Shown here one piece after another: positions 1 to 6,325 of a DNA stretch of 64,000 bases. The stretch is taken from positions 1 through 64,000 of the forward strand of contig DF237304.1 in assembly GCA_000708835.1 (NCBI GenBank), in the 5' to 3' direction. Origin of the DNA: Klebsormidium nitens. Its lineage: Eukaryota; Plantae; Klebsormidiophyceae. Both the position numbers and the translations under genes were made by a program. Every line of letters begins with the position of its first letter. Position 1 is the first letter of the stretch. The notes below the pieces were generated by a model. It was not told where the DNA came from. It saw nothing but the letters and a program-made list of their open reading frames with translations, and did no database searches.

Positions 1-135
1 TTTTACTTGCTGAGCGACAGAATGAGAAATTTTGTCGCGAAGACGCGGCTTTAAAGCCGCGTTTCGGGTTAGAGGTTCTCGTTAAGCAGAGAACCTCTGT
101 TTTCAACTAACTACGATCGTTGAAAACTATCAATT
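1..135. repeat. Split direct repeat, copy A2 (truncated by window edge)
   Basis: Identical to 6012..6146; identity stops after ...AACTATCAATT. Confidence 0.95.
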
Positions 136-349
136 CTCAGCTATTAACGAGAACGTTAATAGATGATCGCAGTGCGAAGCACTGCGAATGTGTGATGGGA
201 AGGGACAGAATAGGGTAGGCAAGATCGGCTCGTGCAAGGCTCACACAGAACACAGAAGCAGTGTGAGGTTAGTGGAGGGAAGGCACGAGCGGGTTAGGGG
301 GGGGGTTAAGAGCAACCCGAAATCGCGTACCTGACCTGGGGCAAAATGG

Positions 350-1416
350 TCAAAAGAAACAGGCTTCGGCTTCGAACGCGCGCAGCTGTGCAATCGGGAT
401 ATCCTCCTGGAGGCCCAGGTTGCGGGTTGTGGCGAGCCGCGACTGGAGGGTTTCCCGGACGTATAAGTCCTTCGCGCGGTCAGAGCGCCAACGGCCGTGG
501 CGTTTGAACAAGCGGTCAGGGACATCGCGCGCGGCCGCGCCGGTTGCGCCACCGCGACGACCGGAGTGAGTTCCGTACAGCTTAGGGTTGAGACCGAGAA
601 GGGACGCGGCCTCCTTGAACCAGCTAAGTACGGTGTCGTAGCAAGGGGGGTTCGCCTTGAGGCGCTGAGACGGAGGGCAAACTAGAGTGGTACGAATTAG
701 AGAACCCGGTCCAGAGGTTTTGTACTGGCCGACGGTAAGGAGGCGTTCGATCAGGGCGACTGGGCAGAATTGGCCCCCGAGGCGAGCAACGAAGATGGTC
801 TCGCCCTTGCGATACTGGTCTGTTTTACTGTCGGGAACGTACAGCTCGAGGTGCGTACAGGAAAATTTCAGATCCTGCCAGCGGATCGCAATCAGGTCGT
901 CAAACCGGAAGAAGGAAACGTAGCACAAAACTATTGCAGAGAGTTTCATGAGACTATAGAGCGTAGCGGTCGGACCGGCCCAGAGGCTGAACAGCTGACG
1001 GATTTGCGAGGCGAGAAAGGGCCGCTTCTGATTCTGGCCGGCGAGTTTAATGCGACGAGCTGCTTCCCGGGCCATGCAAACGATTGGGTGGTTGGTTGGA
1101 GAAGGGAGGCCCGAGAGCGTGTGATTGAAGAAAACGGCGCCTGAGAAAGTTTTCAACGGGGCGGGGGAATTGGCGGTGCGGAGGAGACGCATCATGTACA
1201 AGGCTACTGTGATCGGACTCGACGGAAGAGCGGACACCCCTTTCTCGCTACACCACTCCTTATAACGTCGCCAGGGGCCGGCGTATTGCTGAAACGTTCC
1301 CGGGGCGCGGCAAACTAGAGCGGCGTCGTGCAGGTCGACAGAAAGTTGGGCAAGCTCGCGATCGGTTGATGAAAGGCCAGCAGCGCCGAGGTCGTAACTT
1401 TCGAAGTTGAACCAAT
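350..1416 (-). CDS. Tyrosine recombinase of the retroelement (frame open to 1693; predicted coding start at splice acceptor 1417/1416)
   Basis: Catalytic R (FFRFDDL), K (DSKTDQ), HxxR (THSGRR), H (RHGRW) and Y (DLYV) are present, as is the N-terminal TFQQYAGPWRRYKEWC helix. The ORF-track start at 1693 is TTG, not ATG. Confidence 0.95.
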
Positions 1417-1481
1417 CTGCGTTACAAATCAAAAGCGGAAGTAAGAAAAAATAAAATGAGGAAAGAAGAAAGAAACTGACC

Positions 1482-3520
1482 TCATGTGGAAAAATCGCAG
1501 TCGAGGACGAAGACGTCTGAAATGGGAACTCCCTTCCCGAAGAACCGGTCGCGTGACGCGCGCCCGGGGACCAGGACCTCCCGACCGGCAGGAAAGTACA
1601 GCTGCCGGTGCACGAACGGCGCGAAGCCGCGGCCCTCCGCGACGCTCCCGGAAAGCAACGGCCACCACGGTGCTGAGCGCCAGCCCAGAACAACCAAAGT
1701 CATACGCGCGCGGCACGCGCGCGCGTGGCGGAGCGCGGGGGCCACCAGTGCGGGGGGCGGAAAACAGTAGTTCCGCTCGGGGGATCCCCAATCCTGGGTG
1801 AAGGTGTTCGCGGCCGCCGCGCCGGGACACCAGAAGAACGCGTCGAAGCGAGGGAGCTTCGCGTTGTGCTCACTCGCGAATCTGTCAACCGTGAACGGCC
1901 CAAACTGCCGGGCGACAAAATCAAAAGTCTCGGGCGAGAGGCCGAAGTCATCAAAGTCTCTGATCTTGCTCAGGTAGTCTGCGTGGACGTTCTGCTCGCG
2001 AGGGAGCCATTCCGGGCGGAGCTCGATTCGATGTTCTGCGCAAAACTTGAAGATCTGAACGCAGACAGCCTGCAGGTGTTCCTTCGCAGATCCGCCCTTA
2101 GAAAGAAGCGTGAAGACGTTGAGAGCGTCGCCACGCGCCAAAACGGAAGAATTGCAGAGAAACGGACGAAAAGCTTGGAGGAGACGGAGAAGGCCGGTTA
2201 ATTCCCGCCAAGTTGAAGAGGCGACGCCGTGCACTTCATGCTGTTCCCAGGCGCCGTGCGCCTCGTGGCGCCCCTTGCCAATTTCGAGATGACCACCCCA
2301 GCCGTGGCCCCCTGCGTCGTAGTGGATGACGCGCAAAATGGAATGACGTCGCCAGATATCACGAGTCTGATAGAGCGGGAGATTAGCTTGCCAGAACTGG
2401 AGATCAGCGACAGCTGCAGCGTCTAAGGGGACCTTACTGTACCACGAAGTGCGGGACGCGAGCGCGCGGTGGAGCGAGCGAGAAAACAAGCCGGAAATGG
2501 GACCTGTAACTAGCGAGAAGGAAGTGATGATGCCTGTGACGCGAGCAAGGAGCTTGGCAGGGACAGCGCGAGGCGAACGGAGACAAGCTTGGATGGCGGA
2601 GCTGAGCTTCTGCTTTTGAAGAGCGGTCAAACGAAATTGGCAGAACAGAGTGTCGACGACAAATCCGAGGAATTTGACGACGTGGCTGCGACTGAGCTGG
2701 CACTTCTCTAGCGACACGACTAAGCCGGCTGCTGCGAGATCCGCCAAAACGGACGCCTGGACGCGAGAGAACTCGGCCGCCGAGCGACAAGTAAAGAAGA
2801 AATCGTCTATGTAATGGACCAGCTTAAAGCCGCGCGCGCGCCAGGACTTTGTGAGTTGTCTCATGACCATAGTGAAGACGTGGCAGGCTGGAGCGAGACC
2901 AAAAGGCAGCTGAGTGAAAACGAAGTACTGGCCTTGCCACTCAAATCCCAAGTATTTCCAGTGGGGTTCGTAAATGTCGATGTGGTGATACCCCGCTTTC
3001 AGATCAATCGTGAAAAGGAAATCTTGAGGAAGGCAGAGTTCGGAGATGAGCCGGAGGGATTCGTATTTAAACTTGGGGACTTGAAGAAAGCCGTTGAGAA
3101 ACCGAAGATCTAAGATCAAGCGGAGTTTGTCTTCTGCCTTTGGCACGACGCCAAGGGGACTAACCAGAAAGGGGGGGCGGTCCACCGGTAGAACTGTGCC
3201 AGTAGCCTTGAGGGAGCGGACAGCTTCCGTGACGAAGTCGGCGTGCTCAAACGCTGAGGGATGGTTGCGTTGCCGATGAGGCTCCAAAGGAGGGGAAGAA
3301 GTCCAAGGGAGCTGATAACCTGAGAGAAGGATGCCTAGAACGAAGGTCGAAGTAACGAACGACTGCCAAAACTGGACATGGCGTCGAAGTCTATGACGCA
3401 GCCAGGGCTCCTGCTTGCTAGCAGAAGGTTTTGACGCAGCAGCCTTTCCCGGGTTCTTAAAACCCTCAAATTCGGCGGCCTCCGTGAGGTCGGCAAGCTT
3501 ATGAAGGGATTCATCGGTTG
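1482..3520 (-). CDS. Reverse transcriptase - RNase H - adenine-methyltransferase-like polyprotein (frame open to 3587; predicted start at splice acceptor 3521/3520)
   Basis: RT motifs IDLKAGYHH, QLPFGL, YIDD. RNase H motifs YDAG, SSTWREL, RGD, NVHADYLSK. DIRS-type MT motifs VDRFAS...NAKLPRF and YCFPPP. The ORF-track start at 3587 is TTG. Confidence 0.96.
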
Positions 3521-4794
3521 CTGCGACAAAACAGTAGAAGAACGAGGGATGAGAAACGGAGTAAGGGAAAATGTAAAGAAAAAACAAAAAACATAAAACC
3601 TGAACGTTAACGTGAACGTGAACGGTAAAGAGGAAAGAGAGAGAGAGAGAGGATAAAGAGGAGCGGAGGACAGGAAAAGGGGAAATCTGAAGATCTCGCT
3701 ATAATAACAAAATAATAAAGCGGAAAAAGGGAAGAGGCGAAGGGAGGAGTTAAGTTGGAAAACCTATGCTAACTGCTGACCCTAGCTGAAGATTCAGAAC
3801 GACGAAGCCTAGAAAGAACCTCCAAACGAACTAGACTGACGAGCGGACTTAAGCTAAATGAATACTCTAAGCGACGTTCCTGCAGGTGGATCAGCAGGGA
3901 AAAAACTGGACGTGGACCAAGAATGGTCCAGAATCTGAGCTTAGCATCGTGTCCCCCTGAGATTAGACTTACTACTAGAGAATCAACCAGAGAGAAAAAA
4001 CCTGGGAGTAGTGGATCTGATCAGAAGCTCTGCAAAGTTACAACCTTGTTGAATGGATCAGGATGGTTGTCATCCACCTTTGGGGTAGAAACCCCAAGCG
4101 TAAACTTCACTTCCTCCAAGAGTTGGAATATGAGAAGGAAAAAACTAGGAAGAAACTCTCGTGAACGTTAACGTTAACGTGAACGAAAAAGAAAGAAAGG
4201 AAATGAAAAAAGGGGAGTGTGGAAAGGAGAGGAAAAGGAAAATCAAATTGAGTAGAGATAGAAGTTGCTCAACAGAAACGGAGAGGTCGAACCTAATCAC
4301 ATAGGATCTGTGAATTATGCAACGGACAAACGAATAATAATGATAAAGGACAGAGAAGAAAAATTTTGGCTCAGAGAGCAACGAAAAGTGGATCTGAGTT
4401 TGAAAACTCCCGCTAGTCAGCTCATCATGGCCAAGCTCTGATGGAGAAAAAATCTACATTCAAGAATGCGGCTGAGTGATCGAAGACAAACAAGCATGCA
4501 CTGAGAACTGATTGATGAAATAAGCAAGATTACAAAGGTTGGAAGACATATGTAGACGAAATCTGTTTCCATGCTGAATGTGAATTGCGAAGAATGAAGA
4601 ACGAACTTCCGTTATAATAGATGTCCTGGAGGCTAACCCATAGGAACAAAGCAACCTTTATCACTCAAGTCCTGATGAATGTCTCAGTGGTAACAGTTCT
4701 GTGTGACTACACTTATCTGCTGCTAATCTGCAGGCTATCCATGATGCTAACCAACCTTCTTGAAACTTGCTTGCTACCAGCAACCTGGAAACTA

Positions 4795-5766
4795 TCAATA
4801 GTACCGTTTCCCTGCGTTGGCTGCTATGTTGGCTGTGAGAGGACAGTCAGCTGAGAGGTGACCGAACTGGCGACATGACCAACACTGAGAGTTCATGCCA
4901 CGAGCGCTGGTCTGCAGAGAAGAACCTGGAGCGCGAGGGATGGGAGCGAGGACAGGAGGAGGGAGGGGGGCTGGGGAAGGGGAGCGGTTCGAAGGAAAGT
5001 ATTGGCTCTGGTAGATAGGCGAAGGAACTGGATTGAGGAATGGCTGAGAGACTGGCGAAGGCATGATGAGAGGCGAAGGAGGAGGGACGAACCAACCAGG
5101 AGATGGAGAGGGGGAACGAGAGCGAAAAGAGAAATTGCGGTTGCTGGCTTGTTGGGAAGGGTTTGATTTCTGTTCCTTGGAAGGTTTGGATGCTTCCTCG
5201 CTAGCTTTCCGTTTCTCTGCTAGGGACTTCTTTGCGCGGTTAACCAAGGAGAGTTCTGCAGGATCCTTCGTAGCCTCTTCCCGAAGACGCAGCATCTCAT
5301 CCGCTACCTCCTGACCCTCAGACTCCCAATCTTCCAGATAAAGCATGCGTTCAGCAATAGCATGCTCACCTTCATCACACTGGTTCTTGAGAGCCGCGAT
5401 TTGCTCCTCAGAGAGATCAGCCAGCGGAGAGGAACCATCGAGATGACCGTCGAATGCAGACTTGGCTTGGGACAGTGCATGCTGAGCCTTCTCCAGAGGC
5501 TCCATGTGTCTCTTCACTTGAGGGTTGGTCACCTTGTCTGATCTCTTGGGGATGGACTTCGCTTGGAGCTGCGCTTGAAGGGATTGAATCTGCTCTGATT
5601 GCTTGGCCAGGGTCTCCCGCTGCTCATTCGTTGACTGTTTGATCTGATCTGAGAGCTGCTGCATGAAGGCCTGGCTGCGAAGCGAAGCTTCGCGCACCTC
5701 CTTGACAGCTTCTGCGGGGGAGTAGACCTCATCCTCACGGTCGATTTCGTTAGCACCACCTGCCAT
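4795..5766 (-). CDS. Gag-like protein, 323 aa, with coiled-coil N-terminus, Pro/Ser-rich region and C-terminal CCHC zinc knuckle
   Basis: True ATG at 5766; CWSCRQFGHLSADC = CX2CX4HX4C; lies upstream of RT. Confidence 0.88.
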   Translation of the reverse strand: MAGGANEIDREDEVYSPAEAVKEVREASLRSQAFMQQLSDQIKQSTNEQRETLAKQSEQIQSLQAQLQAKSIPKRSDKVTNPQVKRHMEPLEKAQHALSQAKSAFDGHLDGSSPLADLSEEQIAALKNQCDEGEHAIAERMLYLEDWESEGQEVADEMLRLREEATKDPAELSLVNRAKKSLAEKRKASEEASKPSKEQKSNPSQQASNRNFSFRSRSPSPSPGWFVPPPSPLIMPSPVSQPFLNPVPSPIYQSQYFPSNRSPSPAPLPPPVLAPIPRAPGSSLQTSARGMNSQCWSCRQFGHLSADCPLTANIAANAGKRYY

Positions 5767-6011
5767 GCTCGAAGGCTGAGAGGAAGCTCCTGGAAATTGA
5801 CGAAGCTTTACGCAAGAAGAACACTCAGGTTGAACACGAACTGCATGCTGGCTAAAGGCAACGCTCGTTGATTAAGAAGGCATGAAAAGGAACGGATCGA
5901 AGCAAAGGCATGTAGCTGGAATGCACTTGCTAAGAAGGAAGCTGGAAGGAAGAAGAAGACGAAGGCATTGTTGAGGGGAAGCAAGGAGGCGCCGTCCTCC
6001 TTGCGCTGTGA

Positions 6012-6146
6012 TTTTACTTGCTGAGCGACAGAATGAGAAATTTTGTCGCGAAGACGCGGCTTTAAAGCCGCGTTTCGGGTTAGAGGTTCTCGTTAAGCAG
6101 AGAACCTCTGTTTTCAACTAACTACGATCGTTGAAAACTATCAATT
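6012..6146. repeat. Split direct repeat, copy A1 (5' terminus of the element; may extend further left than can be verified)
   Basis: Identical to 1..135. Confidence 0.95.
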
Positions 6147-6325
6147 TCAAAATTTTCCCAGGCCTGTCTTGACATCAAACAGACCCTGGTTTTGCGGAAC
6201 CCTAAAAGCGAAGCCGTTAACCCTGAGTTAGTCCACCTGCACAGGGCGAGTCAACTTTGCTGCTGGCCTCCTCTTTCCAGCTGCACACGTGAAGAAGGGA
6301 GGCGCTCTTTGCACCTGGGACCACC

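Follow-up and report, generated by a model that had tools for sequence, protein, structure and literature searches.

How does a retroelement make its reverse transcriptase and its recombinase when only its gag gene has a start codon? The question is raised by a locus at one end of a 64,000-nt stretch of Klebsormidium nitens DNA (assembly GCA_000708835.1, contig DF237304.1, positions 1–64,000), hereafter the window. Its list of open reading frames (ORFs) and its sequence place one intact retroelement on the minus strand of positions 1–6146, with the order terminal repeat, gag, a 1274-nt spacer, a frame for reverse transcriptase (RT), RNase H and a methyltransferase, a 64-nt gap, and a tyrosine-recombinase (YR) frame. 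We propose, with a probability that we put at roughly 0.6, that alternative splicing of a single transcript yields the products of all three genes of this intact PAT-like element.

Under this proposal, unspliced RNA would be both the genome and the message from which full-length Gag is translated, and whole Gag would come only from this RNA. A suboptimally used 5ʹ splice site inside gag, after codon 132 plus 1 nt, would be joined to an acceptor at 3521 to give a fusion of the N-terminal part of Gag (GagN) with RT, RNase H and methyltransferase, ending at the TGA of that exon. Skipping of this 2040-nt exon, with 5370 joined to 1416, would give a GagN-recombinase protein. A short intron (1480–1417) would also be real, and would be removed from the RT mRNA without creating an RT-recombinase fusion in the window copy. 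The helical GagN shared by the two products could bring the enzymes into Gag assemblies. Comparison with related copies strongly supports real introns and a predicted GagN-RT protein, and moderately supports a predicted GagN-recombinase protein formed by exon skipping. An initial annotation of the stretch had already put forward a three-isoform splice programme for Gag, RT and YR. All of its coordinates are correct on the minus strand, and its programme stands with these different strengths for its parts, although no joint was found in the RNA contigs and protein databases searched. The features on which the argument turns are as follows (a slash marks a proposed splice cut).

4795–5766, minus strand: gag ORF, 323 amino acids, with ATG at 5766 and stop at 4797–4795
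5370–5766, minus strand: coding part of proposed exon 1 (GagN; 132 codons plus 1 nt, 397 nt), read from the sequence
5364–5373, minus strand: proposed 5ʹ splice site GAAG/GTGAGC, exon end at 5370, phase 1
3521–4794, minus strand: non-coding spacer from the gag stop to the RT acceptor, within proposed intron 1 (3521–5369)
3521–3580, minus strand: pyrimidine tract and proposed RT 3ʹ splice site ...GTCGCAG/, AG ending at 3521, exon from 3520, phase 1
1481–3520, minus strand: proposed exon 2, with RT at ~2658–3143, RNase H at ~1965–2237 and a Dam-like methyltransferase at ~1659–1928
1475–1484, minus strand: RT stop TGA followed by proposed 5ʹ splice site G/GTCAGT
1417–1480, minus strand: proposed short intron of 64 nt between the RT and recombinase exons, acceptor GTAACGCAG/, AG ending at 1417, phase 1
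350–1416, minus strand: proposed exon 3, tyrosine recombinase, 354 amino acids plus stop, catalytic domain at ~452–955, Phage_integrase match below cut-off

Two frames without start codons behind a closed spacer

Only gag begins with an ATG, as the initial annotation had read it. The first Met of the RT frame is residue 217 of 678 (FTMVMRQ), and that of the YR frame is residue 74 of 354 (ALYMM). Recombinase homologues with 51–72% identity have no Met ahead of the conserved N-terminus, save for two Logan products. In those two (P0132 and P0135, 51–53% identity), an M stands exactly at the conserved AGLP motif; it may be an acquired start codon of their own, or a non-ATG start assigned by the ORF caller.

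The spacer of the window copy has a GC content of 0.42, is 63% pyrimidine, and contains 14–22 stops per frame. Across copies of the element, spacers are 211–1405 nt long, with a GC content of 0.42–0.48, and are pyrimidine-rich, closed in every frame and unalignable. With stops in every frame of the spacer, translation cannot continue from gag into RT by readthrough or frameshifting. Because there is also no ATG, Pol would need a spliced form. The exon that splicing would deliver is 2040 nt long, a multiple of 3, with a coding frame of 3520–1482 that ends in a TGA at 1484–1482.

The proposed splice sites and their phases are conserved

We compared 13 copies from three diverged lineages, namely the window copy and twelve more. 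Family 1, which includes the window copy, comprises L001–L004 from K. nitens and L009 and L010 from JGI samples, at 66–76% nucleotide identity to the window copy. Family 2, a sister lineage, comprises L005–L008 and L011, with RT at ~56% amino acid identity. The last copy, L092, has a gag with no more than 33% identity. Alignment of other copies had been proposed in the initial annotation as a check, and the gag donor, both acceptors and their phase proved to be conserved.

At the RT acceptor, the four letters GCAG lie 2 nt ahead of the first conserved codon, in phase 1, in 11/11 copies. Mean pairwise identity in family 1 is 0.40 from position -30 to -5, 1.0 over the GCAG, and 0.77 over the next 30 nt. 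Blast homology among copies ends at the gag stop and begins again at 3524–3530. The recombinase acceptor is in phase 1 in 12/12 copies, with corresponding identity steps of 0.39, 0.93 and 0.80 across the site. Thus, for both acceptors, conservation begins exactly at the AG. Branch-point-like CTAAC/CTGAC motifs are present in the sister lineage. The joint codons would be G+CA (Ala), followed by TDESLHKL, for RT, and G+AT (Asp), followed by WFNF, for the recombinase; the acceptor at 1417 would serve the gag donor as well as the short intron. The RT frame had initially been started at the acceptor at 3521. The frame is in fact open from 3698, with AGs at 3695, 3687, 3600 and 3521, but the AG at 3521 is the only one that is conserved.

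The spacer contains an ACGT-rich motif (GAACGTTAACGT-like repeat units) that is palindromic in part, once at 3597–3636 and again at 4158–4197, and L003 has a similar GTTACGTTAACG stretch immediately upstream of its RT acceptor. This motif could be a protein-binding or regulatory site within the intron.

Is the donor inside gag more than a chance match? There are 17 phase-1 GT dinucleotides in the gag gene of the window copy, so chance would be expected to supply one in the right phase, and a match in phase is not significant by itself. What goes beyond chance is the consensus quality of the site and its conservation in relatives. AAG/GT is found in phase 1 in 11/11 gag genes, down to 33% amino acid identity, and all of them read [G/C]AA GGT at the homologous Gly; in these gag genes, GGT accounts for 50% of Gly codons and A-ending codons for 36–38% of Glu/Gln codons. 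The donor GT is the sole GT kept in one alignment column across the 8 intact gag ORFs. In family 1, the same codon is used in 27 of the 147 columns with an identical residue (18%), and the only run of four same-codon columns, D-E-G-E, is at the donor. Six Gag residues are invariant, and this Gly, G133, is among them. We conclude from these alignments that the putative gag-internal donor is under constraint at the nucleotide level.

The coding length of exon 1 leaves a remainder of 1 on division by 3 in every copy, and the sole frame relation that holds in every copy is that of a phase-1 gag donor with phase-1 acceptors for RT and YR. This relation is the one expected from the programme of the initial annotation, and it fits an arrangement of three exons (GagN, RT and YR) with the middle one as a cassette. 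From this conservation we infer that the sites are used in vivo and that the one donor is paired with both acceptors.

It is highly improbable, in our view, that functional splicing is lacking altogether, with the RT and YR proteins made from non-AUG starts, by internal entry or by supply in trans, and with the splice-like motifs being by-products of coding or composition. Such a scheme could draw on in-frame near-cognate codons upstream of both frames (TTG at 3587 and ATT at 3572; TTG at 1432 and ATT at 1429), and only unspliced contigs have been seen. However, the near-cognate codons sit in pyrimidine tracts that are not conserved, and the GCAG and its phase are invariant while the sequence upstream cannot be aligned. 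Moreover, synonymous sites at the gag donor are frozen, and a GT donor at the end of the RT frame is kept in 12/12 copies amid sequence that is otherwise unalignable.

The proposed short intron does not fuse RT to the recombinase in a conserved way

The initial annotation held that the 64-nt intron keeps RT and YR in frame. This is true of the window copy, where removing the 64 nt puts both in one frame, but the TGA upstream of the donor would remain between them, and the donor phase differs among relatives. The corresponding intron of relatives is 58–80 nt long, pyrimidine-rich and unalignable. A GT donor lies 0–2 nt from the RT end in 12/12 copies, in phase 1, 0 or 2, and is preceded by a stop in only some of them. 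In the window copy and L004, this donor is in phase 1 and follows a stop. In L007 (3799–3839), L008 (5479–5523) and L011 (3359–3397), it is in phase 1 with no stop, which would give an in-frame RT-YR fusion. It is in phase 0 in L001, L002, L009 and L010, and in phase 2 in L003, L005 and L006. Each phase class includes copies with every ORF intact.

These data bear on the possibility that the recombinase is made from the RT mRNA, either with YR set in frame behind RT by loss of the 64-nt intron and translated by reading through the TGA, or by frameshifting or reinitiation. Removal of the short intron would bring RT and YR into one frame in the window copy and L004, where the stop alone separates them, and would give the stop-free fusion in L007, L008 and L011. 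In those three family 2 copies, splicing would yield an RT-recombinase polyprotein, a solution unlike that of the window copy. Nonetheless, we consider this route unlikely. In family 1, the donor is in phase 0 in four copies, the intact L001 and L002 among them, and in phase 2 in one; the only combination conserved in all copies is that of the phase-1 gag donor and the phase-1 YR acceptor. Furthermore, the stop context after splicing would be UGA-GAU or UAA-GAU, and we know of no leaky context of this kind. Since the phase of the RT-end donor varies, an RT-recombinase fusion is not the conserved solution, and GagN-recombinase is; for family 1, we rejected the fusion as a general solution.

Evidence that weighs against the proposal

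Several observations weigh against splicing from the gag-internal donor to both enzymes. The copies compared share phylogeny, and the conservation counts are not independent of one another. In addition, the donor falls within a predicted helix and not at a domain border. Gag has a helical N-terminal half, a disordered Pro/Ser-rich linker and a CCHC zinc knuckle at ~4840–4887 (Pfam zf-CCHC). In a structure model with a predicted local distance difference test (pLDDT) score of 68, helices are placed at residues 17–71, 82–110, 120–150, 152–165 and 174–193, residues 199–290 are disordered, and the zinc knuckle follows. The donor would cut helix 120–150, and GagN would hold both long N-terminal helices.

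RNA data were available as Logan contigs from four runs of two studies with the same organism label, whose status as RNA is a guess, at a depth of 2–7. The contigs match the window copy over gag with 0 differences. Contigs of all four putative RNA runs cross 5370 unspliced; one contig extends 28 nt into the intron at 3521, and another lies inside the spacer (3719–3934). The junctions that the initial annotation had predicted, 5370^3520, 5370^1416 and 1481^1416, were not reported in the low-depth contigs of these runs. Contigs of such depth drop minor paths, and are thus uninformative on minor isoforms. Hence, they attest to unspliced RNA (or DNA) but do not show a lack of spliced RNA. Coverage of RT is sparse and the recombinase has none; in each of the four runs, gag is the best covered of the three.

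One 901-nt contig (4571–5471, 0 differences) stops at 4571 on an Illumina adapter, 224 nt beyond the gag stop. Together with the better coverage of gag, this end hints at a gag-only RNA that terminates in the spacer; it may also be an artefact of low depth.

Protein databases yielded no junction-spanning protein when the RT, YR and GagN exons were each queried separately; only unspliced ORFs or ab initio gene models were returned. One of the latter, the public model P0001 at the window locus, joins 4926 (donor CCAG/GT) to 3520. We rejected 4926 as a conserved donor, as three relatives have no GT there.

The K. nitens models P0001, P0002, P0003, P0005, P0006, P0010, P0013, P0028 and P0046 are chimeric and mutually inconsistent. 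They use differing ad hoc donors, read through the pyrimidine tracts and join RT to the middle of the recombinase, and they look like ab initio artefacts.

Relatives also contain other potential routes from gag to Pol. Intact L001 (~1335–1343) and L002 (~5964–5972) have a phase-1 donor, G/GTTAC, two codons before the gag stop, and full-length Gag-Pol, made through the same RT acceptor, may be an extra isoform in those copies. In family 2, an ATG-containing mini-exon lies between gag and RT in L005 (4078–4143), L006 (1574–1637) and L007 (1400–1439). It starts ...CCAG/GTCATGAC (pattern ...CAG/G[TC][CT]ATGAC) and ends in phase 1, and the shared RT acceptor follows. The same three copies have a phase-0 donor, AAT/GTCTAG, two codons before the gag stop and in frame with the mini-exon. 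This mini-exon route means that the internal donor need not be the sole way to Pol.

These routes, together with P0001, are what favours a reading in which the introns exist but Pol is fused to more of Gag, or to all of it, through the donor at 4926, a donor near the gag stop or a small exon in the spacer, and in which the AAG/GT in gag serves the recombinase mRNA only, or nothing. As well as the missing GT at 4926 in three relatives, the annotated models disagree between copies. In the window copy, the stretch from the zinc knuckle to the gag stop lacks a phase-1 GT, and the one GT close to the stop is in phase 2 and would run into a stop; L003 lacks the near-stop phase-1 donor. The spacers of family 1, including that of the window copy, contain no mini-exon, mini-exon motif or conserved block. 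We therefore regard a longer Gag-Pol as improbable, to about the same degree as production of the recombinase from the RT mRNA, and continue to favour GagN-RT and GagN-recombinase made from one gag-internal donor.

An intact, young PAT-like element

What kind of element is this? The RT protein is 100% identical to an annotated K. nitens protein (GCA_000708835.1). The combination of a Ty3-like RT/RNase H with a tyrosine recombinase in place of a DDE integrase is that of the DIRS order. RVT_1 is detected by Pfam at 3e-19, and RVT_3 and Phage_integrase are detected below the Pfam cut-offs. The catalytic HxxR...Y stretch (HSGRR...DLY) can be read in the recombinase translation, and homologues carry the names Tyr recombinase or integrase. 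The methyltransferase downstream of RNase H matches Pfam Dam at 2e-05, with 24.8 bits against a cut-off of 28.1, and a Dam domain is precomputed in many homologues of the RT frame. The repeats of the element are as follows.

5970–6146, minus strand: 5ʹ terminal repeat A1 (split direct repeats), of which 6012–6146 is 100% identical to 1–135
~5970, minus strand: edge of A1, placed by homology to the 180-nt A repeat of L003
136–248, minus strand: internal repeat B1; window positions 134–242 are homologous to repeat B2 of L003
1–135, minus strand: repeat A2, truncated by the start of the window, 100% identical to 6012–6146
beyond the left edge of the window: repeat B2 of the window copy

A1 and A2 are thus direct repeats with 100% identity, and no inverted repeats were found in the window copy. 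Relatives L003 and L005 show the complete layout of A1...B1-A2-(~550 nt)-B2, which was verified in part for the window copy. Because of the split-direct-repeat layout and the methyltransferase, the element is placed among PAT-like elements as defined previously (PMC3266345). Judged by its domains and repeats, it is a PAT-like tyrosine-recombinase retrotransposon (DIRS order) of K. nitens. With three intact frames and identical repeats, the window copy is evidently young and recently inserted.

A contig of up to 4151 nt, at a depth of ~190–370, matches 5976–6200 near-perfectly and continues beyond 6200; on its opposite side are only short, diverged pieces of gag. It could stem from a strongly expressed neighbouring transcript that enters repeat A1, from a related element or from a chimeric path in the assembly.

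Relation to other elements

A scan of metagenome contigs found only distant relatives, at 31–39% identity, and no further close copies. The distant relatives have an ATG of their own, or have pol directly behind an in-frame gag stop. For this reason, the long spacer and the proposed dependence on splicing are features of this algal lineage. The arrangement with pol directly after an in-frame gag stop is found in L016, L017, L032–L038 and L046, all metagenome contigs with a GC content of ~0.42, and suggests stop-codon readthrough as the Gag-Pol strategy of these distant PAT/DIRS-like relatives.

Closer to hand, family 2 is found in the same genome and belongs to the same superfamily, and shares with the window family a start-less pol, a phase-1 RT acceptor and the conserved gag AAG/GT. 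The two differ in that the mini-exon copies of family 2 would link pol to the end of gag by way of a mini-exon of the 64-nt class, whereas the window family has no mini-exon and the window copy has no usable donor near its gag stop. The shared gag-internal donor and the GagN-recombinase isoform proposed here are new.

In gene content (Gag, RT/RNase H/methyltransferase and tyrosine recombinase), in the A1...B1-A2...B2 repeats and in the occurrence in green algae, the element resembles PAT, kangaroo and TOC3 (PMC3266345). In contrast, described PAT-like members are regarded as free of introns, with ORFs that are separate or overlap. De Mendoza et al. used models without introns when annotating K. 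nitens retroelements (PMC5890265). In the literature we found, key subscription papers aside, there is no description of natural spliceosomal introns or start-less pol or YR genes in DIRS or PAT-like elements.

Introns should be lost from retrotransposons, since their spliced RNA can be copied back into DNA. Exceptions with functional introns are Ogre, some Penelope-like elements and the gag mRNAs of copia-type elements. In Ogre, a Ty3/gypsy element of plants cited in PMC3735527, an intron between gag-pro and RT/INT is removed for translation of the polymerase and kept in genomic RNA. Ogre, a long terminal repeat element, encodes a DDE integrase and has a single intron, whose removal restores one long ORF. 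The window element resembles Ogre in that translation of the polymerase would need removal of a spliceosomal intron; it differs in the proposed gag-internal donor and second enzyme isoform, neither of which is found in Ogre.

A donor inside gag is found in avian leukosis virus, whose Env begins with Gag residues, and foamy virus has a spliced pol mRNA. In the general scheme of retroviruses, unspliced RNA is both genome and gag mRNA, and one 5ʹ donor is used with several acceptors (PMC5035971). Retroviruses and the window element are unrelated lineages, and in the latter, 132 Gag residues would be fused to enzymes, namely a polymerase and a tyrosine recombinase. For Ty1/Copia elements and BARE, alternative splicing sets the ratio of Gag to Pol (PMC5580714, PMC3735527). 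There, splicing removes pol to give a gag-only RNA; the proposed splicing of the window element is the inverse, with the C-terminal half of gag removed to give the enzymes.

What is the significance of splicing in this element? More tentatively than for splicing itself, and at slightly less than even odds, we suggest that a retrovirus-style programme evolved independently here. A Gag N-terminal exon would be spliced to a 2-kb cassette or, by skipping it, to a recombinase exon. RT and recombinase alike would begin with the same Gag tag, which could draw them into Gag particles, and the proportions of Gag, Pol and recombinase would be governed by splice efficiency and not by frameshifting or readthrough.

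An entire lineage of tyrosine-recombinase elements appears to need the host spliceosome to make any of its enzymes, the recombinase included. If our proposal is correct, splicing would be a third way, beside frameshifting and readthrough, of setting Gag:Pol ratios in a little-studied order, and would represent convergence with the env and pol mRNAs of retroviruses. It would also explain the mutually inconsistent chimeric models in the public K. nitens annotation. Our proposal also gives a practical rule by which elements of this kind can be annotated in streptophyte algae.

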